From NCBI GenBank assembly GCA_001179505.1, contig CDMY01000745.1, positions 1 through 25,065 of the forward strand: a DNA stretch of 25,065 nt. Direction: 5' to 3'. Origin of the DNA: Vitrella brassicaformis CCMP3155. Lineage: Eukaryota > Protista > Chromerida. Numbering within the stretch: position 1 is the stretch's first letter; each line of letters opens with the position of its first letter. The position numbers were made by a program, and so were the translations under genes. Under the pieces are notes generated by a model. The model worked only from the letters and a program-made list of their open reading frames with translations. It ran no database searches and had not been told where the DNA came from. Positions 1 through 18,724 of this stretch are shown one piece after another.

Positions 1-859
1 GTTGAGCTGTTCATGCCACAGCGGGGGGCCATCAACAACCTCAAGCTAAGACCACTGGCCCAGGCGGCCCGCATTCCACCTCGTGTCGGCTGCATCGAGG
101 TTCGTGTTCGTGCGATCGGTCTGAATTTCCGTGACGTGTTGAACGTGATGGGATTGTATCCGGGCGACCCCGGTCCGCCGGGCGGCGACTGCTCGGGGAC
201 GGTGGTTGGCGTGGGCGAGGGCGTGAGTCATCTGTGTGTGGGAGATGACGTCTACGGCGTGCTACGTGACGACGGAGGCCAACCTGATGGCCATCAAGCC
301 CGCATCGATGACCTTCGAAGAGGCGGCCGCCCTGCCGGTCGTCTTTGTCACGGTCGAGGTGGCCTTCCGAGAGCTTGCCAAGGTCACCAAGGGAGACAAC
401 GTCCTCGTCCACGCGGCCAGCGGCGGCGTGGGGCTCGCGGCCATCCAGTACTGCAGGGCCGTCGGGGCCAATGTCTATGGCACGGCGGGCAGCCAGCACA
501 AACAGGACTCCCTACGACAGCAGGGCCTGCAGCTCGTCACGAGCTCGCGCGACGCCAACCAGTTCCAGGCCGACGTGAAGCAGACCAACAGCAAGGTCGA
601 CGTGGTGCTCAACTGCCTGATCGAGGACTTCATTCCCTTGTCGCTCGACGCGATGGCGCCCAAGGGCCGCTTCATGGAGCTGGGCAAGCGCGGCATCTGG
701 AACAAAGAGGAGGTGCTGGCCAGGCGGCCCGACTTGGCCATGTACGAGGCGATGGCCATCGACCAGATGATGGAGCAAGATCCCAAGTGGTTCGGCGGCA
801 TGCTCGACCGCCTCCGGGGCCTGGTCGATATTGGCAAGGTCAAGCCCATCCCTCTGCAC
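1..859 (+). CDS. Type I PKS/FAS enoylreductase (ER) domain, copy 1 (partial; frameshifted by a 20-nt deletion near 262)
   Basis: GLNFRDVL..GLYPG, LVHAASGGVGLAAIQ (NADPH-binding) and GRFMELGK motifs split over ORFs 13..1236 and 236..1258. Copy 2 has GCGCCCGGCTGCCTGCGGAC at this point, absent here. Confidence 0.92.
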
Positions 860-1159
860 NNNNNNNNNNNNNNNNNNNNNNNNNNNNNNNNNNNNNNNNN
901 NNNNNNNNNNNNNNNNNNNNNNNNNNNNNNNNNNNNNNNNNNNNNNNNNNNNNNNNNNNNNNNNNNNNNNNNNNNNNNNNNNNNNNNNNNNNNNNNNNNN
1001 NNNNNNNNNNNNNNNNNNNNNNNNNNNNNNNNNNNNNNNNNNNNNNNNNNNNNNNNNNNNNNNNNNNNNNNNNNNNNNNNNNNNNNNNNNNNNNNNNNNN
1101 NNNNNNNNNNNNNNNNNNNNNNNNNNNNNNNNNNNNNNNNNNNNNNNNNNNNNNNNNNN
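860..1159. other. Assembly gap (300 N)
   Basis: Run of N; same length as the other two gaps. Confidence 0.99.
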
Positions 1160-2430
1160 CCGATTGTATCCTGGCGACCCCGGTCCGCCGGGCGGCGACT
1201 GCTCGGGGACGGTGGTTGGCGTTGGGGAGGGCGTGAGTCACCTGAGTGTGGGCGATGACGTCTACGGCGTGGCGCCCGGCTGCCTGCGGACCTACGTGAC
1301 GACGGAGGCCAACCTGATGGCCATCAAGCCCGCATCGATGACCTTGGAAGAGGCGGCCCCCCTGCCGGTCGTCTTTGTGACGGTCGAGGTCGCCTTTGGA
1401 GAGCTTTGCCAAGGTCACCAAGGGAGACAACGTCCTCGTGCACGCGGCCAGCGGCGGCGTGGGGCTCGCGGCCATCCAGTACTGCAGGGCCGTCGGGGCC
1501 AATGTCTATGGCACGGCGGGCAGCCAGCACAAACAGGACTCCCTACGACAGCAGGGCCTGCAGCTCGTCACGAGCTCGCGCGACGCCAACCAGTTCCAGG
1601 CCGACGTGAAGCAGACCAACAGCAAGGTCGACGTGGTGCTCAACTGCCTGATCGAGGACTTCATTCCCTTGTCGCTCGACGCGATGGCGCCCAAGGGCCG
1701 CTTCATGGAGCTGGGCAAGCGCGGCATCTGGAACAAAGAGGAGGTGCTGGCCAGGCGGCCCGACTTGGCCATGTACGAGGCGATGGCCATCGACCAGATG
1801 ATGGAGCAAGATCCCAAGTGGTTCGGCGGCATGCTCGACCGCCTCCGGGGCCTGGTCGATGTTGGCAAGGTCAAGCCCATCCCTCTGCACACATTCGACA
1901 TGAGCAGCGCCGACCAAGTCACCGGCGGCATCGCGGCCTTCAGGTTCATGCAGAGGGCCCAGCACATCGGCAAGGTCGTCATGCAAATACCGTCCGCCAT
2001 CACGCCGCCCCACACAGGCGACACACAGCGCGACGAGGCGACACCGGCCGACCGCCAAGCTGACGGATGCTATGTCATCACCGGGGGGCTCGGCGGACTC
2101 GGAATGCTCGTCGCAGACTGGCTGGTGGATGAAGGCGCGAAACACATCGCTCTTGTGTCGAGGCGCGGCAGGCCGACCGATGCGGTGGCTGCCTCTGAGC
2201 TGTGGAAGAAGCTGACGGCACCCGAGCCTCAGGGCCGCTCCAAGGCGGCCATCCACTGCATGGCCGTGGACGTGTCCAGGAAGGACGAGTGCGAGAAGGC
2301 CTTTGCCGATCTGAATGAGCGACTGCCGAACAACCCAGTGAGGGGCATCTTCCACGCCGCTGGTGTGCCTGACGACGCTGCCCTCAGCAACCAGACCAAA
2401 GACAAGGTTGAGAAGGTCTACTTGCCGAAG
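1160..2430 (+). CDS. Type I PKS/FAS exon: ER copy 2 (+1 frameshift near 1406) and N-terminal part of ketoreductase (KR)
   Basis: ER motifs as in copy 1, ending QRAQHIGKVV; KR motifs YVITGGLGGLG and HAAGVPDD; exon ends YLPK at donor GTGAGT (2431). Confidence 0.93.
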
Positions 2431-2825
2431 GTGAGTGAGACCCCCAAGCTTGCTTCGACTCTCACTCATTCACTCATTCACTGAGTCAGTCAGTCAGCCA
2501 GTCAGCCAGTCAGCCAGTCAGTCACTTGGGTTGTGAGGCAGCCAGCCAGCCAGGCCGTGGCTGCTGCCCTCGCCCTTCCTCTCACTCACTCGCATCGCCA
2601 GTCACTCACACACTTTATCACTCTTTGCTTGCGCCATTCAGTCAGTCAGTCAGTCAGGCACTCACAATTCCGTCGCTCTCTCACTCAGTCCCAGCGAGCC
2701 AGCCAGCCAGTCAGTCGAGCACTCAGTTAGGAGACCCCCAACCGGAAGAATGAATGTATCGTTCCCCTAACGAGCATTGTTTGTTACTCATCCATCCATC
2801 GCTTCTGCCTCGTGTGTGTGTGCAG
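2431..2825 (+). other. Spliceosomal intron in KR with (CAGT/CAGC)n microsatellite
   Basis: GTGAGT...TGTGTGCAG; removal joins YLPK to VMGAWYLHEL, restoring the KR PKV.GAW.LH motif. Confidence 0.92.
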
Positions 2826-3587
2826 GTGATGGGCGCGTGGTACCTCCACGAGCTGTCGCTCGACGAGGACACCCCTCTCGACCACTTCATGATGTTCTCT
2901 TCCGTCGCCTCACTACTCGGCAACTTTGGTCAGGCCAACTACTCGTCGGCCAACTCCTGCCTGGACGCCCTCACCGAGTACCGCCGATCCAAGAAGCTCG
3001 CGGCGCAGAGCATTCAGTGGGGCCCGTGGATCCAGCAGGGCATGGCGGTCGAACTCAAGCAGCACCTCGACAAGGCGGGAATGCGCGGCATAACCAACGA
3101 TCTTGGTCTTCGCGTCCTCGGCGACGTCATGCGGCACTCTGAGAGCGTCGGGGTGACGTGCTGTCAGGTCTTCAAGTGGGACATCTTCCTGTCGAGGTAC
3201 GATGTCATCCCGCCCTTCTTCGAGACAGTGCGGTCAGCTGCCACGCGGGGCGCGGCGGCAGGCGTGTCGGTTAAGCTGCGCAGCATGGATGCAGCGGCCC
3301 TCAAGGAGTACATCCACACGACAGTCGTGGATGAAGCTGCAACGGTTCTCGGCATGACGGAAGCGCCGCCTCTGGATTCCCCTCTGCAGGAACTGGGCAT
3401 CGACTCACTCGGCGCCGTCGAATTCCGCAACGCCCTGTCCTCCAAGATCGGCGTCAAGCTGCCCGCCACCACGCTCTTCGACTACCCGACGCTCAACGCC
3501 ATCATTGACTTCATCTACAGTGAGGTCTCCGGGGGGGCGGAGGAGGCGGCCGCTGTGGACGAGTGGGGTGGGCCGTTGCCTGAGGCC
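2826..3587 (+). CDS. PKS KR C-terminal part and ACP, module copy A
   Basis: FSSVASLLGNFGQANYSSAN (catalytic Tyr), SIQWGPW, ACP LGIDSLGAVEFRN with phosphopantetheine Ser, LFDYPT. Confidence 0.94.
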
Positions 3588-3887
3588 NNNNNNNNNNNNN
3601 NNNNNNNNNNNNNNNNNNNNNNNNNNNNNNNNNNNNNNNNNNNNNNNNNNNNNNNNNNNNNNNNNNNNNNNNNNNNNNNNNNNNNNNNNNNNNNNNNNNN
3701 NNNNNNNNNNNNNNNNNNNNNNNNNNNNNNNNNNNNNNNNNNNNNNNNNNNNNNNNNNNNNNNNNNNNNNNNNNNNNNNNNNNNNNNNNNNNNNNNNNNN
3801 NNNNNNNNNNNNNNNNNNNNNNNNNNNNNNNNNNNNNNNNNNNNNNNNNNNNNNNNNNNNNNNNNNNNNNNNNNNNNNNNNNNNNNN
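3588..3887. other. Assembly gap (300 N)
   Basis: Run of N. Confidence 0.99.
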
Positions 3888-3986
3888 CCAGTCATCCACC
3901 CAGTCAGCAGACTGGAAGAATGAATGCATCGTCCCTCACGAACATTGTTCTCATCCATCACTTCCGTCTCGTGTGTGTGTATGCAG

Positions 3987-5717
3987 GTGATGGGTGCCTG
4001 GTACCTCCACGAGCTGTCCCTCGACAAGGAGACCCCTCTCGACCACTTCATGATGTTCTCTTCCGTCGCCTCACTACTCGGCAACTTTGGTAAGGCCAAC
4101 TACTCGTCGGCCAACTCCTGCCTGGACGCCCTCACCGAGTACCGCCGATCCAAGAAGCTCGCGGCGCAGAGCATTCAGTGGGGCCCGTGGACCCAGCAGG
4201 GCATGGCGGTCGAAGTCAAGCAGCACCTCGACAAGGCGGGAATGCGCGGCATAACCAACGATCTTGGTCTTCGCGTCCTCGGCGACGTCATGCGGCACTC
4301 TGAGAGCGTCGGGGTGACGTGCTGTCAGGTCTTCAAGTGGGACATCTTCCTGTCGAGGTACGATGTCATCCCGCCCTTCTTCGAGACAGTGCGGTCAGCT
4401 GCCACGCGGGGCGCGGCGGCAGGCGTGTCGGTTAAGCTGCGCAGCATGGATGCAGCGGCCCTCAAGGAGCACATCCACACGGCAGTCGTGGATGAAGCTG
4501 CAACGGTTCTCGGCATGACGGAAGCGCCGCCTCTGGATTCCCCTCTGCAGGAACTGGGCATCGACTCACTCGGCGCCGTCGAATTCCGCAACGCCCTGTC
4601 CTCCAAGATCGGCGTCAAGCTGCCCGCCACCACGCTCTTCGACTACCCGACGCTCAACGCCATCATTGACTTCATCTACAGTGAGGTCTCCGGGGGGGCG
4701 GACGAGGCGGCCGCTGTGGACGAGTGGGGTGTCCCGGTACCTGTGGCCATGTCTGAGAGCCTGGCTGTGGTGAGCGTGTCGTGCCGCCTGCCCGGCGGGG
4801 TGACAACCCCCTCATCCTTCTGGTCGATGCTCATGGACAAGACCGACTGTGTCGACGAGGTGCCGCTGACCCGCTGGAACGTTGACGAGGTCTACGACGC
4901 CGACCCCGATGCCAAGGGCAAGTGCTACACGCGAAAGGCGGCCTTCATGGAGGCGGCCGACATGTTCGACAACGCCTTCTTCAACATCGGCCCCGCTGAG
5001 GTCAACTGCATGGACCCCCAGCAGCGGCTGATGCTTGAAGTGGGCTACGAGGCCTTCCACAGCGCGGGCCTCAGCCGCGAGAAGCTCATTGGCCAGGACA
5101 TGGCCGTGCTCATCGGGTGCTGCAGCCAGGACTGGAACTTCATTGACTCGACGGACAAGAGCAGCAGCTACGCTGGCACGGGAGGTGCCGTCAGCATCGT
5201 CTCCAACCGCATCTCGTACGTGTTCGGTCTCAAGGGCCCCTCCATGACCATCGACACGGCATGCTCATCTTCATTGGTGGCCATGGACGTGGCGGTCAAG
5301 GACATGCGCATGGGGGTGTGCCGCGGTGCCCTGGTGGGAGGCGTCAACCTGATGCTCTCGCCCCACCCGTTCATTGCGCTCTGCAAGGCGCGCATGCTCT
5401 CGCCGGATTGCAAGTGCCAGACGTTTGACGCCAAGGCCAACGGCTACGTGAGGGGCGAGGGTGCGTGTGCCGTGGTGCTGCGGCGCGCGAGTGATGTGGA
5501 GGCGATGAAGCTGCGGCGGCTCGCTACTGTGCTTGGCTCGTCGGTCAACCACGATGGCCGAAGTGCCAGTCTGACGGCACCCAGCGGTCCCGCGCAGCAG
5601 GAGGCCATCAAGGAAGCGCTCAAGCAGGCCGGCGTGAAGCCATCGGCCGTCTCGTACATTGAGACCCACGGCACGGGCACATCCCTCGGCGACCCAATAG
5701 AGTTTGGAGCCCTTCAG
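3987..5717 (+). CDS. PKS KR C-terminal part and ACP (copy B) followed by ketosynthase (KS)
   Basis: Acceptor ATGCAG ends 3986; KR/ACP nearly identical to copy A; KS motifs CRLPGG, MDPQQRLMLE, DTACSSS (Cys), NGYVRGEG, HGTGT (His); donor GTAAGG at 5718. Confidence 0.96.
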
Positions 5718-5868
5718 GTAAGGTACCGTACCACGTGACCGTGTACTTGCAATGCAATTCAATGCAATGCATGTACTGTATGCATGACTGACTGTACTGA
5801 CTGTATGTTTCCATGATTTGTCCTTCGATGCGATGCGATGCGATGCGATGCTATGCTATGCGATGCAG
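5718..5868 (+). other. Intron in KS with (CGATG)n microsatellite
   Basis: GTAAGG...ATGCAG; phase-0 join EFGALQ|GVLG. Confidence 0.9.
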
Positions 5869-6433
5869 GGTGTGTTGGGTCCGGGTCGCAGTGACGGCAA
5901 CCCTCTTGTGCTGGGCGCTCTCAAGACCAACATCGGGCATCTGGAGGGAGCCGCGGGCATAGCGGGTCTCGCGAAGCTCATCATGACGCTCCTGCACGGC
6001 TGCGCGGCGCCCAACCTGTACTTGACTCAGCTGAACCCCTACCTTGACATCGAGGGCTTCCCGGTGGTCTTCCCCACCGAGCCCGTGCCGCTCGTCTCTG
6101 GCCTGCCCGCCAAGGAACGCATGGTCGGCGGCGTCAGCTCCTTCGGGTTCGGCGGCGCCAATGCTCACGTCCTCGTGGAGGCCAAGGCGCTCAGTGCCGC
6201 GCAGATCGATGAGATGCTCAAAAAGGACAGTGGGTCGGCGGCGCTGCAGAACAAGATCGGGTTCATGTTCACCGGGCAGGGCTCCCAGTACGTCGACATG
6301 GGGCGCAAGCTCTATGACAACGAGAAGGTGTTCCGGGAGTGCATCGACGAGTGCGCGACCATCTTGGATCCGCTGCTGCCCGTGCCACTTACAGGCATCC
6401 TCTACCCCAAGACCGACCAGGCCAAGACCAAAA
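5869..6433 (+). CDS. PKS KS C-terminus, linker and start of cis-acyltransferase (AT)
   Basis: KTNIGHLEGAAG (second His), SSFGFGGANAH, then FMFTGQGSQYVDMG; truncated by gap. Confidence 0.95.
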
Positions 6434-6733
6434 NNNNNNNNNNNNNNNNNNNNNNNNNNNNNNNNNNNNNNNNNNNNNNNNNNNNNNNNNNNNNNNNNNN
6501 NNNNNNNNNNNNNNNNNNNNNNNNNNNNNNNNNNNNNNNNNNNNNNNNNNNNNNNNNNNNNNNNNNNNNNNNNNNNNNNNNNNNNNNNNNNNNNNNNNNN
6601 NNNNNNNNNNNNNNNNNNNNNNNNNNNNNNNNNNNNNNNNNNNNNNNNNNNNNNNNNNNNNNNNNNNNNNNNNNNNNNNNNNNNNNNNNNNNNNNNNNNN
6701 NNNNNNNNNNNNNNNNNNNNNNNNNNNNNNNNN
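6434..6733. other. Assembly gap (300 N)
   Basis: Run of N separating the PKS AT from an unrelated gene. Confidence 0.99.
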
Positions 6734-6782
6734 GGGGTTGAGTGGGCAAGAGCGAGAGGTTGATGTGTTGTGATTGCTTCAG

Positions 6783-7177
6783 GCGAGAATCCCGCCTTGT
6801 TGCAGAGCTGCTACACGACATCCCTGAACATACTCAAGGTCACACACACACGCGCGCACACACGTGTGGGGCACAGTTTGGTGTTCTTCGGTGCCATTCC
6901 ATCGTTACATGAATGGTGTCTGGCTATGCTCAGGAGAATGATCTTCGGAGCATAGCTTTTTCCTGCATCAGCACTGGGATCTTCGAATACCCCAATGCTC
7001 GGGCAGCCAAGGTCAGCCCGATGCATAAGAGATGTGAATATGTGTGTGCCTTGCCGTGCTTTAAAGGTTGCCCTCGGTACGGTGCGTGACTGGCTGAGTG
7101 ATCCCGATAACTTTGCGAGCGTCGATCGCGTGGTGTTCTGCACCTCCTTTGCCAAAGACAAGGACATATAGGAGAGG
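6783..7177 (+). pseudogene. MacroD-type macrodomain (ADP-ribose binding/hydrolase), C-terminal half, 3 exons, in-frame TAG at 7169-7171
   Basis: Exons 6783-6838, 6934-7011, 7067-7177 splice to GENPALLQSCYTTSLNILK-ENDLRSIAFSCISTGIFEYPNARAAK-VALGTVRDWL...VDRVVFCTSFAKDKDI*ER, matching the MacroD pattern CY..SL...L.S.AF.CISTG.(F/Y)GYP..AA...L.T.R.WL...VDR..C...KD..IY. N-terminus lies in the gap. Confidence 0.85.
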
Positions 7178-7317
7178 GTGGTTGCCCAATCAAACAACAC
7201 ACACACACACACGGACCCATATACACACACACACCCCTCCACAGACCCACATACTCGGCTGTCTGCCTAAAGGTGCAAACACGTATCTCCTCTGTCTGTG
7301 TCTGGGTGCCGTGTCAG

Positions 7318-8482
7318 ATTATGGATGCTGTGTTACGTGGTGAGGAGGAGGGCGAAGGCGGTGCAGCTGAGGAATACGAACCGGCAGACGACATCGAAGA
7401 GGACACATCTCCGGTGACCTCTCAGAAAGCCCCCTCGTCAACAATAACCGCAGCGATAGGAAGCCTGTTGATGTCCATTGGGTCCGAGACGAAGCAGGCG
7501 ACGTCTCAGAAAGCCCCCTTGCCAACAACGACCGCAGCGAAAGGAAGCCCATCAATGTCCATTGGGTCCCAGATGAAGCTTGCGCGGTGCTTCAATAAAG
7601 CGTATTCCTCGGTGTGCGGGAAATTATCATATGCGGCTTGGCCCTTGATTCCCAACCGCTTCAGCTTGGGAGACTTTGGCATCTTCAAAAATGGCATCTT
7701 CCACAGCAAGGGCAATATCTTGGACTTGCAACCACCGCCTTGGGACCCGAACGATAAATGCCGCGGTCCAGCATCCTGTGTGGATGTATCCTGTGGCAAG
7801 ATCAAGACTGTCAAGATGGAAGGCAAGGTAGAAGTCGAGACCCTTCCAGCGACGGGGGACGTCAGTGTTGCCTTCGAGTTTCTCTCGGAGAACACCGCGG
7901 TCTTAAGGGCATTCGTGGAGAGGGAACAGATTAGCAACACTGATAAGGTCTTATCGCGACTTGTCCTGCATCCATCTTGGAAGAGGGGTTACAAGGTGGT
8001 GACAGCCGTTGACATTGGCAAGCAGTGTGTAGCTCTTGCTGCCGAGAAGAAGTTCGCCAAGGTGGAATTCAGGGGTGAAGCTAGTATACTCAAGCAACTC
8101 GAGACCCCGTGGAGCGCCAAGGTGATACAGATATGTACACACCCACGCACATGGAAAGAGAGGGCACGAAATGCAGAGAGGTCAGACAGACAGAGTGCGC
8201 GAATGAGAGAGCATACAGATGAGAATGGCATTCATGGAGTGGCATACGTTTGTTTGCCCTCCGCTCAGGACCAACAGGGCGACCAGCAGCAGCAAATACA
8301 ACCATTCACAGTGGAGAGTCGGGGAGGGGCCATGGTTCATCTCGTTGGGGCAGAAGGCGTGATAGGGCTTGAGCTGTTGGGATGGGAAGATGTTACTGTG
8401 GAGGATCCAAGAGGAATCTTCCGGGGAATCTTCCGTCACAAGAGGCCTCTGCCTGGTCAAGTCTTCATCACCACACTCACTG
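7318..8482 (+). CDS. Acidic linker plus gasdermin-like pore-forming domain (domain about 7573-8400; in-frame 147-nt intron 8122-8268)
   Basis: Acceptor GTGTCAG ends 7317. Motif order YAAWP...LGDFG.FKNG.F...GNI; FEF.SEN...L.A; I.N.DKVL..L; W...YKVVTAV; AAEK..AKVEF.GEA; GVIGLEL parallels the strand order I recognise in bacterial gasdermins. Recognition by eye, no search run. Confidence 0.62.
7416..7583 (+). repeat. 84-bp in-frame tandem duplication in the linker
   Basis: CTCAGAAAGCC at 7421 and 7505; protein TSQKAP..T.TAA.GS..MSIGS..K twice. Confidence 0.9.
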
Positions 8483-8786
8483 GTGAGTCAGTGAGAGAGT
8501 GAGATATGGTACAGACAGACCAAGTCATTTGACGCCCATGATTGTGCTCGTTTTCTGCTGATAATTGGTCTGTACTTATAGGCGACGTGGTGATGACATT
8601 GGATGTGTCAGCCCCTCCTACACGACCGAAAGAGTGAAGGCCGACGTGCACAACCAGCTGAGTATCCCTCCTGAGGTCCAGTGCTTAGTCTTTGCCCACC
8701 GTGAGCTCGAAGACGGCCACACTTTAGCAGACTACAACGTCCGGAGCAACGACACGATCAAGCTCAGCATCCGTCTGCGAGGCGGA
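8458..8786 (+). CDS. Ubiquitin-like domain with intact C-terminal RLRGG; intron 8483-8581; 2-nt frameshift at 8605-8608
   Basis: QVFITTLTG|DVVMTLDV(S)PSYTTERVKADV...IPPEVQCLVFAHRELEDGHTLADYNV...IRLRGG aligns with ubiquitin end to end; removing one GT from GATGTGTC restores the frame. Confidence 0.9.
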
Positions 8787-8867
8787 GGCTCGCTGCCATT
8801 ATCTGACTTCTCGGAGGAAGACGGGGAACCATTGAGAGCTCCGATTCCCCCGCGGCAGGACACAGGA

Positions 8868-8934
8868 CAGAGGCCGAAAGGACGCCCATTGATATCCAGT
8901 GGGTCCCAGATGAAGCTAGCGCGGTGCCTGAATA
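8868..8934 (+). repeat. Truncated second copy of linker end and gasdermin-like N-terminus
   Basis: KGRPLISSGSQMKLARC matches KGSPSMSIGSQMKLARC at 7537-7590; nucleotide similarity stops at AATA 8934. Confidence 0.88.
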
Positions 8935-9043
8935 TGCTAGAGACAGCCACAAGACACAAAATGGGGAGAGAAACTGATGCTCCCCACGGCACTCCATCCA
9001 TTCATGAATGTGTGTCTTTTCCTCTCTCTGTTGGCCGTTGTAG

Positions 9044-12000
9044 GTATCCCCTTGTGTGCAACCCTCCCTACGTGCCAGTCAAAGACAACCCCACTGGCTG
9101 CTACCTCAGGGACTTCTCTCTGCCGTCAGAATGGACCGGTCGCCGCATCCTCGCCACGTTCGGTGGCGCGTCGTCGGCCTACTACGTGTGGGTCAACGGT
9201 CAGCCGGTGGGCTACGCGCAGGACTCGTTCATGCCCAGCGAGTTTGACGTCACGGCCCTGGTGCGGCTTGGCGATGACAACACCAACACGATCGCCGTGC
9301 AGGTGATGCGGTTCTCCGACGGCAGCTACATCGAGGACCAGGACCACTGGTGGACATCGGGCGTATTCAGAGACGTGGAGACATTCGCAGCGCCCAGCAC
9401 AACCATCAGTGACTACGTCGTGCAGGCCACACTCGACAACAAATACCAGTAAGACAGCAAGGAACAGCAAGGAGGGTGTGAGCCAACGGCAGACACATGC
9501 ATGTGCTCTTGCCTTAATTGCAGGGATGGCATACTGAAGGCTCGTGTGCAGTTGGACGGCCTCCAGGATGACAAGAGCTACTCTGTCCAGTTCCGCCTCT
9601 ATGACTGGGAGGGCTTCACCATGGACCCATCGACCGAACAAGACATCAGACTGCCGGTAAGTCGGCACACACGCCGCTCGTGCCTCCCTCACACCCAAAT
9701 CGACTGTCGCATGTGTCGATCAGGACCTGTCGCCCATCTTCGAGCACACAGAGGCCGTCACCGGTGGCCAACAGACATCAACCGATGCAGCCCCATTCAA
9801 GCAGCGAGAAGAGATCCCTCTGCTTGCTGAGACATCCGCAGGCCAAGACCATCACGCATTTCTCGAGTGGACGGTGCGCGTGCCGTCTGTCCGCCCCTGG
9901 ACTGCCGAGACTCCCAACCTGTATTTCATGACCATCGGTCTGCTGGAGGGGGGCAAAAGTGAGGCGCTGCAGTGGGAGGGGATGAGGGTCGGCTTCCGCA
10001 CTGTGGAGATACGTGAGAGCCAGCTGATGGTCAACGGCAGGCCGATTGTTGTCAGAGGTGTCAATGGTCACGAACATGACCCGAAAGCAGGTGCACAAAG
10101 CAAACAAGGGAAGAGAGAGTGTGCTCACTTGTTGTATCCTTGTTGTGTTGTATTGTGTCGTGATGTGTGTCGTGGCGCAGGCAAGGCGGTGTCGCTTCAG
10201 TCGACATGGGCGGATTTGCGTCTGATGAAGCAGCACAACATCAACGCCGTGCGGACGTCTCGCTACCCCAACGCACCATTCCTATACGACATGTGCGACG
10301 AACTCGGCCTATTCGGTAAGACGACAAACAAACCAACACAACACGCACATGTAAACGCCCCTCATTGCCGCATTCATGCATGTGTGTATGGATGTGTACG
10401 TTCAGTTGTGGACGAGGCTAACATCGAGTGCCACGGCAAAGGCTACTCACCCATCCTAAAGTAACTAACACCTACCGCACACACTTCACAAGTGACGATC
10501 GCCGTTCTCACTGCCCGCTCCTGGATATATCAGGTACATATTCTTCAACTCGAGTGAGATCCCTTTCAGTCGCCTCGCATCGGACCCCGAGTACCGCAGC
10601 CAGTGGCTCGCGTGCGTCACACGCATGGCCCAGCGGGACAAGAACCACCCCTCCATCATCGTTTGGTCCCTCGGCAATGAGGCGGGCACGGGGCCCAACG
10701 TGCGGGCAGCATATCGGTGGCTGAAGCGTTACGATCCGGCCAGGCCTGTGCAGTACGAGTGTGGTGGGTCTCCCATTGACGTGTCGGACATCAAATGCCC
10801 CATGTACCCGCCGGTAGAGGTCATCAAGCAATACGGCCACCAGCAGACAGGTACACGAGGAGAGACGGCGAGAGATGGCGGGCATGCAGCCATGGACCGT
10901 GCGTGATATTCGTGTGTCTGTTGTGTTTCTGCCTGCCTGCTGCAGACAAGCGTCCGATGATATTGTGTGAGTACCAGCACGCCATGGGCAACTCCAACGG
11001 CAGCTTCAGGGAGTACTGGGAGGCGTTCAGCCATCACGCCAACCTGCAGGGCGGGTTCATATCGGGCTGGGTCGACCAGTGCGTCCCCAAGACGTTCGAC
11101 AAGATCGAGGCGTGGGCGTATGGCGGCGACTTCGGCGACACCATCAACGATGCCAACTTCAACATCAACGGCCTCGTGCTGCCGGACCGCACCATCAAGC
11201 CGTGCATGCACGAGGTCAAGTATTTCTACCAGCCGATCGCCGTCCACCTCCTCGGCGCCAAGGCAGCACCAGGCGGCGACACGGTCACGGTGACGATCCG
11301 CATCACTAATCAATTCATCCATCAGAGTGTCACACATGACATGATCCGCTTTGAGGCCGTCTTCAGCACCGACACGGCATTCGATGCCTACGAGAGCCAG
11401 GCTATCAAGTGCCCGACGCTCGAGCCTGGCGCAGGCGAGGAGGTCACGGTCGAGGGCAGGATGCCGCCCAAGAACGCTGCCATGGGCACAGAAGGGGGGA
11501 AGGAGGGCTGCATTCCTGACGTGTGGATCACTGTGAGGGCAATCCTCGGCAAGACGACTAAATGGGCTGATGAAGGGTAAGCCAGCACGAGCACGCCTGG
11601 CCACAGCACTCATCACGGTGTTCCTGTGTGTCTTGTCCGTGCAGGCATGTGGTGGCGACAGAGCGCCTCTCTCTGACCGACAGCTTCCGCGACGCTCTCC
11701 CGACCGCCCCCGGCCCCCAAACCTTTCTGCGCTTCCCGCCTGCCGGTGGTGATGCCGCTAAGGACCTGACGATAGAGGACTGCGGCGACTACGTGGCGGT
11801 GCAGGGAGAGGACTTCAAGCTCGCCTTCGACCGCGGCCGACTGGGGGGGCTCATATCGTGGGTGGCCATACCTTGGTCAAGACAGGAGTGGGCAGACCTC
11901 GCGACAAAGCCTGACCAGTAATGAGGGCGAAAGGAGGGAAACCACGCTTCTGCTACGCACCCATGTGTGTGTTGGTGGTCAGGGAGTTCGCGATTGAGTA

Positions 12001-14704: not shown

Positions 14705-15270
14705 TCACCAGGACGGTCCTTCTGTGTCGGGCGGGCTGAAAGTAGACGTAGACACAATGTCAACTGTCACGTATGGCGTGGGGCTTGGCGACTCGACGTC
14801 AGCTGCAATGGGCACGACAGTCGTTGTGGTGCCCTCGACCGCCCTCTCGGCCTCATTTAATGCCTTCTCTGCTGCACACACAGCACACAGACAGACGTGT
14901 GTATGTGTATGTATGTACCATATACACATACGGAATATGTGTCTCTTGTTTTTGCCTTCTTCCTTCATATCTTCTCTCTGTTCTTCCATCTTGTCTGGAG
15001 CCGACTCATTGGCTGCAATGCAGACGACAGATACCAACAATGTGAGCGGCAGGCATACGGACCCCCTCCCCTGCCTCTGGCTGCCTATCTCTGTCCAGCT
15101 CTTCCGTCTGCTGTTCCACCAGCTGCGACGGTATGGTCACGGGAGGCACGTCCTCAGGCGGCGGTGTAGTGGGCGCAGCGGTGGTGGTCGTGGTCACGAG
15201 CTGCCCCTCATCCTCCCCGTTGTCGACCGCCCGGCTCGGCATCTCGCTCACGGAGGGAGGGCCCGACTCC
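14705..15270 (-). pseudogene. 3' exons of an acidic, Ser/Thr/Pro-rich (mucin-like) protein, cut off by the minisatellite array
   Basis: Minus-strand exons ~15270-15085, 15012-14932, 14871-14705 with canonical sites (CATTGCAG; GTATGT...GTGTGCAG); peptides VTTTTTAAPTTPPP, EGTTTTVVP..SPSPTP; stop TGA. Confidence 0.6.
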
Positions 15271-16838
15271 ACGCCGACACGTGCATGTGCACGTGTGCGC
15301 ATAGGGGTATTCATTATATACACACTCTCCAAGTCCAAACGTGCATGCGCACGTGTGCGCACATAGACATTCATCACATATACACTCCACGTCGACACGT
15401 GCATGCGCACGTGTGCGCACAGAGACATTCACCATATAGACACACTCTACGTCGACACGTGCATGCGCAGGTGTGTGCACCGAGACCTTCATCATATACA
15501 CACTCCACGTCGACACGTGCATGCGCACGTGTGCGCACATAGACATTCATCACATACACACATTCCAAGTCGACACGTGCACGCGCAGGTGTTTGCACCA
15601 AGACATTCATCATATACACACTCCACGCCGACACGTGCATGTGCACGTGTGCGCATTGGGGTAATCATTCCAAAGCACTGATACATTCAGTGCGCATAGG
15701 GGTATTCATTATATACACACACTCCAAGTCGACACGTGCATGCGCAGGTGTGCGCACTGAAACATTCATCATATACACACACTGCAGGTCCAAACGTGCA
15801 TGCGCAGGTGTGCGCACTGAAACATTCATTATATACACACACTCCAAGTCGACACGTGCATGCGCAGGGGTGCGCACAGAGACATTCATCATATACACAC
15901 ACTCCATGTCGACACGTGCATACCCAGGTGTGCGCACTGAAACATTCATCATATACACACACCCCAAGTCAACACGTGCGTGCGCACGTGTGCGCACAGA
16001 GAGGTTCATCATATACATACACTCCAAGTCCAAACGTGCATGCGCAGGGGTGCGCACAGAGACATTCATCATATACACACACTCCGAGTCGACACGTGCA
16101 TGTGCACGTGTGCGCACTGATACATTCAGTGCGCATAGGGGTATTCATTATATACACACACTCCAAGGCGACACGTGCATGCGCAGGTGTGCGCACTGAA
16201 ACATTCATCATATACACACACTGCAGGTCCAAACGTGCATGCGCAGGTGTGCGCACTGAAACATTCATTATATACACACACTCCAAGTCGACACGTGCAT
16301 GCGCAGGGGTGCACACAGAGACATTCATTATATACACACACTCCAAGTCGACACATGCATACGCAGGTGTGCGCACCGAGACATTCATCATATACACACA
16401 CTCCAAGTCCAAACGTGCATGCGCAGGTGTGCGCACAAAGACATTCATCACATACACACACTCCATGTCGACACGTGCATGCGCAGGTGTGCGCACCGAG
16501 ACATTCATCATATACACACACTCCAAGTCCAAACGTGCATGCGCAGGTGTGTGCACCGAGACCTTCATCACATACACACACCCGACCTTCATCACATACA
16601 CACACCCCAAGTCGACACGTGCGTGCGCACGTGTGCGCACAGAGACATTCACCATATACACACACTCCAAGTCGACACGTGCATGCGCAGGTGTGCGCAT
16701 AGGGGTATTCATTATATACATACACTCCATGTCGACACGTGTATACCCAGGTGTGCGCACTGAAACATTCATCATATACACACACTGCAGGTCCAAACGT
16801 GCATGCGCAGTTGTGCGCACACAAACATTCATAATATA
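15266..16838 (+). repeat. 60-bp minisatellite array, left arm (about 25 units)
   Basis: Consensus ACTCCAAGTCGACACGTGCATGCGCAGGTGTGCGCACTGAAACATTCATCATATACACAC; units are in exact register with the 60-base lines 15721-16080. Confidence 0.97.
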
Positions 16839-17149
16839 GTAATGCCTCACTACAAAATCTCATCCCTTATCCATCAACCTATTTATCTATTGATCCATCA
16901 TCAGTTGATGTTTCTCTTGACATCATCTTTCAGTATACCAGCCACATCAAGCACCACATCTGTTCATTTCGTCTGAACCATCCGTTCATCGACATAAAGC
17001 TGTCGGTCAACAGCATCCAGTAGAAACGCTCACACACTTGCTGGACCACTCGCACCACAAACCACAAACTAAACACGCCGTTGACGTCATCGTGACCATG
17101 GTGTCTGCTTGTCGGCTGTGTCTCGCCGACACGGTCAGCATTTTTCGAG

Positions 17150-17338
17150 TCAAAGCGTGCCTCTGTCGTATGTGGATCGTACATGAGCCAGCGGCCCTCC
17201 TGAGAGAGACACCATCAACCATATCCCACAGCTGCACGGCATGGTCCCACCCGCCGCTCACTATTATGGGCTCGGTGGGGTGGAGACGGATGGAAAACAC
17301 CCCATTGGAATGGCCGGGGTACATACTAGACCCGGTGC
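17150..17338 (-). pseudogene. WD40-repeat exon fragment
   Basis: Acceptor GCACAG then GTGSSMYPGHSNGVFSIRLHPTEPIIVSGGWDHAVQLWDM, a canonical GH...SGGWD..V.LWD repeat; rest of gene not identifiable. Confidence 0.78.
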
Positions 17339-17738
17339 CTGTGCGTGCGGGGGCAAGCAGCAAGCACTGCTACATACGTGCATGCATATCACGTGTGTTG
17401 CCATTGAATTTCGCCTCTGAGCGTGACATTGACGTCTTGGCCACACGGAAGGGAGAAAAAGTGCTGGAGCTGTCTGTCAAAGCCGGTACAGGTCCTTGGG
17501 AATTTATGTCATGCACATCCATATCCTTAAACCCATTTAGGTATGGCGTATCGTGCGTCAAAATACCCTTAGTGGAGGGTGCCATCAGCCAACCGGCAGC
17601 TCGTAATGGACGACAAGAACGCCTCTCTTCATTTCAGTTGGACTGGAGGCATGTCAACGAATGGAGGGTCCATACGTGCATAGGCAACTACACGTGTCGC
17701 ATCGCGTTGCTGCGACGCTGTGCTGATGTCGTATGCAG

Positions 17739-17997
17739 GTATATGGCGGCAATGATCCTGAGACGAAGGACCCCATCGACTCCATTCCCACGAAGCGCTT
17801 CGAGCACTCCATCGTGCTTGCGGAAACGCCGTAAGCCACATCCACGCAGACTTAGTCCCTCTGTATGTGTCGCTCATCTCTCTTTTACTTCATGCTGCAG
17901 CCACTCACCCGTCGACTCCTGGCTGTATGATCGCGTTGAGGCCATCGACAAGAAAGACAAAGCCAAGGGGATGAGCGCCGCCCTGCTGTCATCTTGA
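17739..17997 (+). CDS. Two terminal exons of an unidentified gene
   Basis: Exons 17739-17830 and 17901-17997 with phase-consistent GTAAGC...GCTGCAG intron give VYGGNDPETKDPIDSIPTKRFEHSIVLAETPHSPVDSWLYDRVEAIDKKDKAKGMSAALLSS*. Confidence 0.55.
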
Positions 17998-18014
17998 GGC
18001 TCAAATCTGGGAGC

Positions 18015-18724
18015 CATGCGCACACCTGCGCATGCACCCGTCGACTTGGAGTGTGTGTCTATCATGAATGGCTCTGTGTGCACACCTCCGCATGCACGCG
18101 TCGACTTGGAGTGTGTGTCTATCATGAAGGACTCTGTGCGCACCCCTGCGCATGCACGCGTCGACTTGGAGAAGTGTGTGTATATGATGATTGTCTCTGT
18201 GCGCACACCTGCGCATGCACATTTAGACTTGGGGTGTGTTCTGTATGCGCACACCTGCGCATGCACGTTTGGACTTGGAGGGTGTGTATATGATGAATGT
18301 CTCTGTGCGCACACCTGCGCATGCACGTTTGGACTTGCGTGTGTAAATATGATGAATGTTTGTGTGCGCACACCTACGCGTACACGCGTCGACTTGGAGT
18401 GTGTGTATGTAATGAATGGCCTTGTGCGCACACCTGCGCATACACGATTGGACTGGGAGAGTGTGTGTGTGTGTGTGTGTCTACGATGAATGTGCGCACA
18501 CTGCGCATGCACGATTGGACTTGGAGTGGGTATATACGATGAATGTCTCTGTGCGCAGGTGTCCCTGTGCGCACACCTGCGCATACACGTGTCGACTAAG
18601 AGTGTGTGTGTGTGTGTGTGTGTGTATACGATGAATGTCTCTCTGCGCACATCTGCGATATGCACGTTTGGTCTTGGAGTGTGTGGATATGATGAATGTC
18701 TCAATGCGCACACCTGCGCATGCA
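18015..18724 (-). repeat. Same 60-bp minisatellite in inverted orientation, right arm (about 12 degenerate units, with (GT)n tracts)
   Basis: GTGCGCACACCTGCGCATGCACGCGTCGACTTGGAGTGTGTG is the reverse complement of the left-arm unit. Confidence 0.95.

Follow-up and report, generated by a model that had tools for sequence, protein, structure and literature searches.

The interval at positions 6783–8786 (+ strand) of contig CDMY01000745.1 from the alga Vitrella brassicaformis CCMP3155, part of an analysed stretch of 25,065 nucleotides (nt) called here the window, carries exons of a macrodomain, a gasdermin-like domain of about 245 amino acids (aa) and a ubiquitin-like domain. It is probably a recently inactivated unit of an expressed, broken tandem array, that is, a mosaic locus. 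Contigs from public sequencing runs link the three domains on one spliced RNA; an in-frame TAG lies near the end of the macrodomain and an indel lies within the ubiquitin, therefore the three share an RNA and not a reading frame. An intact version of the design is encoded on another contig of this genome, C839, where a protein of 512 aa, P0001, combines a gasdermin core, a linker, a ubiquitin-like domain and an acidic tail.

The proposed array can be described as three parts. Unit A, located at the end of contig C761, comprises a gasdermin remnant, a ubiquitin-like domain, an acidic tail and a MacroD macrodomain, whose last three core exons are those at 6783–7177 of the window and whose frame ends at the TAG. 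Unit B, in the window, starts with the last intron and the acidic last exon of the macrodomain gene; two copies of the leader connect these in frame with a gasdermin-fold domain that is complete. Its ubiquitin is split by an intron placed as in the host ubiquitin, after TLTG, and broken by a one-base indel, with the post-ubiquitin leader kept and the tail lost. In the third part, unit C, a stub of a gasdermin start is spliced to an N-truncated beta-galactosidase. The signs of decay are the two lesions, the lost tail, the truncated unit A, the stub of unit C, the truncated beta-galactosidase, and the lack of any other macrodomain–gasdermin gene.

Transcript, lesions and origin of the macrodomain

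The RNA and DNA evidence consists of contigs from four public runs (X1, X2, X5 and X7) aligned to window positions 6734–10700. Spliced forms are present in X1, X2 and X7; X5 is unspliced and DNA-like, and covers 6776–9125. Splice joints 7011/7067 and 7177/7318 are seen in X1, X2 and X7, joint 8121/8269 in X2 and X7, and joint 8482/8582 in X1 and X7, which confirms the last three of these as they had been predicted in a sequence-only reading of the same DNA, together with the presence of the macrodomain exons, the middle domain and the ubiquitin-like domain. A single RNA contig of 1363 nt, composed of 7317–8119, 8267–8481 and 8581–8925, contains the middle domain and the ubiquitin with zero differences from the window, and zero differences are also found in X5 over its whole span. 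Joint 6838/6934 was not seen in these runs, a CA repeat at the site having been skipped.

Both lesions noticed in the sequence-only reading, the TAG at 7169–7171 and the frameshift at about 8603–8607, are unchanged in the RNA contigs and in X5, and therefore are not assembly errors. At the frameshift site the window reads TTGGATG-TGTCAG, one base shorter than the closest ubiquitin copy, that of C761, with TTGGAGGACGTCAG. In the open reading frame (ORF) table of the spliced RNA, ORF-A covers ubiquitin A, the tail and the macrodomain, is continuous with the C761 macrodomain-intron donor CCA/GTAAG, and ends at the TAG. ORF-B, with its first ATG at 7321, runs from 7172 through the gasdermin domain to the TGA at 8635; its frame is open over 7172–8634, so the gasdermin frame does continue without a stop into QVFITTLTG as previously read. 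The ORF-C frame holds the remainder of the ubiquitin, the leader and then the beta-galactosidase. The same table contains no open frame spanning the macrodomain, the gasdermin domain and the ubiquitin. The first strand of the window ubiquitin and its remainder are in different frames owing to the indel near 8605, so there is no intact beta-grasp frame ending in Gly-Gly; the macrodomain, in which the TAG replaces a Tyr of the last helix, has no complete fold in one open frame either. Any translation of ORF-B would yield a core that lacks the tail and is extended by about 84 residues at its N-terminus.

The other half of the macrodomain was located by means of the RNA contig that ends at 6781. 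It goes on as ..AAGTATATCATACACGCCGTCGGACCCAT, coding for KYIIHAVGP, and this loose end is an exact, genome-unique match to C761:23223-23252, 24 bases from the end of that contig; the N-terminal half of the macrodomain is thus outside the window, at the end of C761. The sequence before it there opens with a fragment of a gasdermin-like domain, no more than its final ~60 residues (..VEFRGDASILKQLET..GKEGVVGL..), followed by RIFITTSTR, an intron, a ubiquitin-like exon ending in ARGGGG, the leader GSLPLTPDFSEEKGEPLRAPIPLRQ and an acidic tail ..GRSVVFFVRTDWGDELPDDVEED.. (VVFFVRTDWGDELPDDV). The macrodomain starts in the same exon and frame as this tail, as ..LWQGDITTLKCDAIVNNANQ, and after the intron SLLGGGGVDGAIHNAAG..KYIIHAVGPIG follows. 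The ubiquitin intron is 658 nt long in unit A vs 99 nt in the window. A segment present twice upstream of unit A, at 5049–5434 and 7303–7784 of C761, lies beside a 300-N gap; this repeat is possibly a mobile element, responsible for the loss of the 5' part of the unit A gasdermin.

Pfam Macro is matched by the C761 exons as well as by those of the window. The C761 macrodomain exon is of the MacroD type, with MACROD1 (3.4e-19) and MACROD2 (4.3e-19) as the best matches among PDB sequences; the MacroD motifs NNANQSLLGGGGVDGAIH and ISTGIFEYP are present in the macrodomain. Its exon structure recurs in a stand-alone MacroD gene on contig C456 (..FLAKDQDIYER, an intron, IMDGVLRGEDEE.., then a long acidic tail), including the last intron and the acidic last exon found in the window, and the C456 exons are 81–85% identical to the window macrodomain exons. 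On sequence grounds the window/C761 macrodomain, the domain of ORF-A, is a duplicate of this gene and a copy of a housekeeping-type MacroD hydrolase. Since its 5' exons on C761 follow the ubiquitin and tail of unit A in frame, the macrodomain belongs to unit A, of which it is the C-terminal end. It had been taken in the sequence-only reading for an N-terminal sensor of the window gasdermin; this view had to be abandoned, and for ADP-ribose control of the pore, suggested along with it, only adjacency speaks. The upstream neighbour in the transcript is the end of C761, and the polyketide-synthase (PKS) sequence before the N gap at 6434–6733 is probably a mere scaffold neighbour.

The other end of the unit is equally disrupted. 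After RLRGG the window repeats the unit A leader, the tail is missing, and a third gasdermin start is present instead. The donor at 8924 splices this stub (MKLAR) onto an exon of a glycoside hydrolase family 2 (GH2) beta-galactosidase that starts at Pfam position 51 of 169. The joint, 8923/9044, is supported by a single run, X7, and on one side by 27 bases; the five beta-galactosidase introns that follow are confirmed. The window beta-galactosidase (9044–~13000, +) has no exon for positions 1–50 of the N-terminal sugar-binding domain, and a paralogue on contig C333 (12076–12694, −) retains this missing first exon.

The gasdermin-fold domain, the ubiquitin-like domain and the tail

Genome-wide searches covered 72.7 Mb in 1064 contigs. 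A six-frame search detected three full gasdermin-like copies: the one in the window, P0001 on C839, and P0002 on contig C740. P0001, also found in MMETSP transcriptome data, is intact; its ubiquitin ends in LRAGG and its tail reads ..IVFLLHTDWGDKLTDHD... P0002, of 452 aa, consists of the core, a transmembrane (TM) segment and the tail ..VVLEVEMDWGDELSDDM... In both proteins the initiator Met, aligned with the Met at 7573 of the window, is the first residue of the gasdermin-like domain. Intact paralogues, which the sequence-only reading recommended looking for, thus exist for the gasdermin–ubiquitin combination and not for the macrodomain–gasdermin one: genome searches with the gasdermin domain, Macro and ubiquitin-tail sequences revealed no other gene joining a macrodomain to a gasdermin, and neither a three-domain nor a macrodomain–gasdermin relative was found among 1.84 billion representative proteins. 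The linkage of the three domains therefore stands at the level of the spliced RNA, with no paralogue linking all three. A homologue search for longer fusions of the P0001 core returned only P0001 itself.

A profile of the three Vitrella copies identified 469 proteins among the same 1.84 billion representatives. Most of these are about 240 aa long and share, from residue 1, the pattern MGLA..FN..L....AAW.P......LGDYG....GVF...GN; an acidic ..DD[VLIF] terminates many of the family's proteins. No match to the gasdermin domain was obtained in the family libraries searched, i.e., a Pfam copy that includes PF04598 and lacks PF26164 (Bact_GSDM), PADLOC 2.0, and NCBIfam. When the family profile was compared with PDB sequences, the top three matches were all bacterial gasdermins (bGSDM): 7n50 (6e-5), 7n51 (0.045) and 8sl0 (0.12). 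Language-model look-alikes in a protein atlas also pointed to gasdermin, Bact_GSDM being present in 12% of the members of one look-alike cluster. Two other candidate traits or identities were discarded: a palmitoylated N-terminal Cys as a family trait, as the family does not conserve the Cys6 found in the window copy, and Pepco and EACC1 (PMC12642450) as the family's identity, because of their size (117 aa and ~13 kDa).

The evidence on the fold comes from models of P0001, which is 35–38% identical to the window copy, and of the bacterial member P0024. In the AlphaFold2 (AF2) model of P0001 the core has a predicted local distance difference test (pLDDT) value above 90. In VIA-align this model gives Z 10.5 to 9a84, the Vitiosangium bGSDM pore (root-mean-square deviation 3.5 over 148 residues), and Z 10.4 to 8sl0; rows 3–18 are gasdermins too (Trichoplax, GSDME, GSDMA3, GSDMB, GSDMD, RCD-1 and 7n50-52), and cholesterol-dependent cytolysins and MACPF proteins appear only below Z 5.7. 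The model of P0024 (mean pLDDT 92) was subjected to an unbiased comparison with 48,161 PDB chains, in which gasdermins occupy the top 14 rows (Z 10.6–6.0) and rank 50 has Z 2.8; Foldseek agrees on the gasdermin fold for this protein. Judging from these models, the middle domain has the gasdermin N-domain fold, and the idea that it is gasdermin-like and fused to a ubiquitin-like domain, put forward from the sequence, was well founded.

Each of the four bacterial neighbourhoods examined has a protease gene adjoining that of the gasdermin-like protein: a Trypsin_2–Lipase_3 fusion in the first, Peptidase_C14 with CHAT in the second, CHAT with a TIR gene nearby in the third, and CHAT with TPR-S in the fourth. 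No linked protease was seen at the algal gasdermin loci. Some metagenomic members (P0043, P0070, P0077) are fusions to a ParA/MinD-like ATPase, which precedes the gasdermin-like part, to a TIR-like domain with a TM segment, or to peptidoglycan-binding domains. A quick tree places the window copy, P0001 and the protein of the locus L009 in one cluster with P0002 near, within the ~240-aa family (SH-aLRT, an approximate likelihood-ratio support value, 85–92). The tree is compatible with a single acquisition from bacteria and is not decisive.

The ubiquitin of P0001 is in an intact frame (Pfam 1.7e-16). In the host polyubiquitin gene (C33:178700-180700) every repeat has an intron between TLTG and K, and the ubiquitin domains of the gasdermin genes have the same intron; given this shared position, the ubiquitin module was recruited inside the eukaryote. 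In the P0024 model a low-confidence linker (221–240) is followed by the C-terminal 14 residues, docked with pLDDT above 90. MAFFT places the tails of P0001 and P0002 in the columns of the bacterial terminal 'DD', and the 'DWGDELxDD' motif is enriched in bacterial tails (17 of 104 members vs 3.6% of shuffles). On these grounds the algal 'DWGDELxDD' tail may be a homologue of the bacterial C-terminal peptide. The window copy has no tail, and its frame is broken.

A mechanism can be proposed for the intact design. The C-terminal tail would keep the core shut up to cleavage of the linker, as it presumably does in the bacterial relatives. There the neighbouring protease would make the cut; in the alga the ubiquitin-like domain would occupy the linker, and a ubiquitin-specific protease cutting after Gly-Gly could detach the tail and free the pore-forming core. 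The order gasdermin, ubiquitin, tail suggests, without proof, that the pore is set off by a cut at the ubiquitin. In its broadest form, as a speculative proposal, chromerid algae may have rewired a bacterial-type gasdermin to a ubiquitin-system trigger, with a domain derived from the host polyubiquitin inserted exactly in the cleavage linker so that a deubiquitinase-type cut would unleash the pore, the window being a relic of a multi-unit gasdermin–ubiquitin polyprotein that captured an ADP-ribose hydrolase.

Alternative explanations

Several observations weigh against the reading of the window as a decayed unit or against the tail-based trigger. The window copy keeps nearly all the near-invariant residues of the family alignment, and according to the RNA contigs the gasdermin region is transcribed at about the level of its neighbours. 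The frame is preserved over both unit junctions (macrodomain last exon, leader and gasdermin B; ubiquitin B, leader and the stub of gasdermin C), and the leader repeat has a length divisible by three; by rough estimate the chance of such frame preservation without selection is a few percent, and a genuine polyprotein may therefore have existed until recently. The public runs may all come from one cultured strain, so alleles free of the lesions may exist. As for the trigger, AF2 left the P0001 tail unplaced (pLDDT below 50) and gave the ubiquitin low confidence too, offering no view of docking; a complex prediction for the P0001 core (1–265) and tail (434–480) scored 0.01, which is no answer either way; and a tail-only hidden Markov model built from bacterial C-termini was not significant on the algal tails. 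In addition, the eukaryote-like locus L009 (GCA_029979955.1, JARPNH010007142.1, 800–4542) carries a gasdermin-like gene, encoding P0151 and closest to that of C839, head-to-head with a minus-strand Lipase_3 gene. After the latter come two ubiquitin-like modules that share the 'PLP..GG' leader and the intron after TLTG, the last of which ends in ..RRIEFEVHKDWGHEVADDF at the stop (tail motif ..KDWGHEVADDF). Because the cassette follows the lipase here, and not the neighbouring gasdermin, it may serve more than one effector. It is also worth mentioning that Lipase_3 recurs beside one bacterial relative, fused to a trypsin-like protease.

The best of the other explanations, and one compatible with the present decay, is that the array was until recently a true polyprotein, [gasdermin, ubiquitin, tail, (macro), leader]n, cut after each Gly-Gly like polyubiquitin, the TAG and the indel being very young. 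This is a real though doubtful possibility. It would account for the in-frame passage across both junctions with a leader repeat of 28 codons, for the canonical RLRGG retained in the window ubiquitin, for the conserved gasdermin residues, and for the location of ubiquitin A, tail and macrodomain in one exon and one frame; it is at odds with a unit A lacking most of its gasdermin and a unit C reduced to a stub, with a macrodomain copy that clearly comes from a stand-alone gene, and with the failure to find a multi-unit open frame in any other genome or paralogue searched.

It is rather improbable that ORF-B is a working stand-alone tail-less gasdermin, translated from the ATG at 7321 or 7573 of a transcript starting in or near the intron 7178–7317 and regulated by other means such as its acidic N-terminal extension or its expression level. 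An unspliced contig does span 7148–7346, the contig depth of the gasdermin–ubiquitin part exceeds that of the macrodomain exons (depth being a weak measure of expression), and the core is intact with its conserved residues kept. Such a frame, however, terminates inside a wrecked ubiquitin, and no separate transcription start is in evidence, contigs alone being unable to show starts. Moreover, it is established that bacterial and animal gasdermin cores without the inhibitory part are toxic, as referred to in PMC12642450 with Johnson et al. 2022 as the source.

Finally, a working macrodomain–gasdermin–ubiquitin protein forming an ADP-ribose-controlled pore is very improbable: compatible exon phases on a single spliced RNA with all three domains speak for it, but two independent recoding events, stop readthrough and ribosomal frameshifting, would be needed, the TAG stands in place of an ordinary codon, the indel restores the paralogue length only if taken as a mutation, no paralogue or relative fuses a macrodomain to a gasdermin, and the macrodomain is a copy of a housekeeping-type MacroD hydrolase.

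The locus, its surroundings and known systems

The features of the locus are listed in Table 1. Upstream of the gap, window 1–6433 (+) encodes PKS modules, namely enoylreductase/ketoreductase-like (ER/KR-like) and ketosynthase (KS) sequences and the start of an acyltransferase (AT), with 2754–3587 resembling 3924–4760 and two further 300-N gaps; it probably has nothing to do with the gasdermin locus, the two being connected by scaffolding only. Downstream, the RNA contig depth of the beta-galactosidase gene is higher than that of its neighbours, and window 15266–18724 contains long minisatellite-like arrays, for which translation of either strand gives HTH/CA-rich repeats.

Table 1. Features of the Vitrella brassicaformis locus, in window coordinates.
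Feature	Position	Strand	Evidence and remarks
Assembly gap, 300 N	6434..6733		N run
Macrodomain exon ending GENPALLQSCYTTSLNILK	6783..6838	+	Begins in phase 1; RNA contig extends upstream to C761 exon ..KYIIHAVGPI; 3' joint 6838/6934 inferred only
Macrodomain exon ENDLRSIAFSCISTGIFEYPNARAAK	6934..7011	+	Pfam Macro 2.8e-6; joint 7011/7067 in X1, X2, X7
Macrodomain exon, end ..KDKDI(stop)ER	7067..7177	+	85% identity with C456 MacroD exon (..KDQDIYER)
In-frame TAG replacing conserved Tyr codon; terminates ORF-A	7169..7171	+	TAC in C456; TAG in RNA contigs and DNA run
GT..AG intron, the last intron of the MacroD gene	7178..7317	+	Spliced in X1, X2, X7; same position in C456
Homologue of MacroD acidic last exon, IMDAVLRGEEEG..	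7318..7412	+	First ATG of ORF-B at 7321; C456 has IMDGVLRGEDEE.. past the same intron
Two tandem 83-nt leader repeats, in frame	7413..7579	+	blastn 7413-7495 vs 7497-7579, 84% identical; second repeat bears the family start Met
Gasdermin-fold domain, exon 1	7573..8121	+	Met 7573 aligns with starts of paralogues and bacterial members; conserved W, GD.G, F, GN, F, W kept
GT..AG intron within gasdermin domain	8122..8268	+	Frame open throughout yet spliced out; joint in X2, X7; segment absent from paralogues
Gasdermin-fold domain, exon 2 (..VGAEGVIGLELL..), then 'RPLPG' leader	8269..8457	+	'PLP..G' leader also before ubiquitin in P0001, unit A, L009
Ubiquitin-like domain, first strand QVFITTLTG	8458..8482	+	P0001 equivalent SILIKTLTG
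GT..AG intron after TLTG	8483..8581	+	Joint in X1, X7; position as in every host polyubiquitin repeat (C33)
Ubiquitin-like domain, exon 2, RLRGG end	8582..8786	+	Pfam ubiquitin 2.5e-11 from 8610; frame broken at ~8603-8607
TGA terminating ORF-B (gasdermin frame), 17 codons past the frameshift	8635..8637	+	ORF table of spliced RNA
Post-ubiquitin leader GSLPLSDFSEEDGEPLRAPIPPRQ	8787..8874	+	DNA and protein alignment with C761; in unit A continues into acidic tail, tail absent here
Third gasdermin leader and start copy (..SSGSQMKLARCLN)	8875..8934	+	87% identical to 7538-7597 (60 bases around gasdermin start); donor at 8924
First retained exon of N-truncated GH2 beta-galactosidase	9044..9448	+	In frame with shifted ubiquitin frame; Pfam Glyco_hydro_2_N positions 51-169 only

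Gasdermins execute pyroptosis in animals and abortive infection in bacteria; to our knowledge, those of eukaryotes outside animals and fungi are barely known. The literature searches found no publication pairing gasdermin with Vitrella or Chromera, and for the combination of bacterial gasdermin, ubiquitin-like domain and macrodomain the ten matches listed contained only work on viral macrodomains. The gasdermin–ubiquitin fusion of Vitrella is a design without earlier description. Bacterial-type gasdermins occur in a free-living relative of apicomplexan parasites, and a large, protease-linked bacterial family of ~240-aa proteins with the gasdermin fold escapes the family libraries searched. A ubiquitin in place of the bacterial cleavage linker is a concrete and testable idea of how a pore-former and ubiquitin-specific proteases could be coupled. 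The window, with its tandem units, captured MacroD gene and truncated beta-galactosidase, is a natural record of gene shuffling, and a caution that three domains on one spliced RNA do not amount to a three-domain protein.

Among known systems, the bacterial gasdermins (bGSDM; 7n50, 7n51, 7n52, 8sl0, 9a84) are the closest. They share with the family the length of ~240 aa, the twisted beta-sheet core (Z 10.5 for P0001 and 10.6 for P0024) and a weak but specific profile match; the modelled bacterial member also has, like them, a short C-terminal peptide past a flexible linker, and the protease genes adjoining the bacterial members follow the known operon logic of bGSDM. Unlike bGSDM, the family is missed by the libraries named above, and its algal members have introns, a ubiquitin-like domain (a TM segment in C740) between core and tail, and no linked protease. 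GSDMD/E, fungal RCD-1/HET-Q1 and Trichoplax GSDM have the same fold (Z 6–8), and restraint of a pore-forming N-domain by a C-terminal part is the general logic; the algal family, in contrast, is devoid of the large helical C-terminal domain, and its affinity, with weak tree support, is instead with the ~240-aa bacterial-type family. The trigger proposed for the alga, a cut after the ubiquitin Gly-Gly, also differs from a caspase or subtilisin site.

Polyubiquitin and the fusions of ubiquitin to ribosomal proteins resemble the algal arrangement in having a ubiquitin fold that ends in (R)GG and is followed by more polypeptide, in the intron after TLTG and in the tandem in-frame units. In the alga, however, the ubiquitin is internal to a pore-former and not N-terminal to a ribosomal protein, the domains are divergent, with LRAGG as the end of that in P0001 and ARGGGG in unit A, and processing is only proposed. 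The ADP-ribose hydrolases MacroD1/MacroD2/YmdB are matched by the macrodomain in the PDB sequence comparison (best value 3.4e-19) and in the MacroD motifs; unlike them, it is a duplicate, truncated and bearing a premature TAG, that stands after a ubiquitin-tail module, and the intact stand-alone gene is that on C456.

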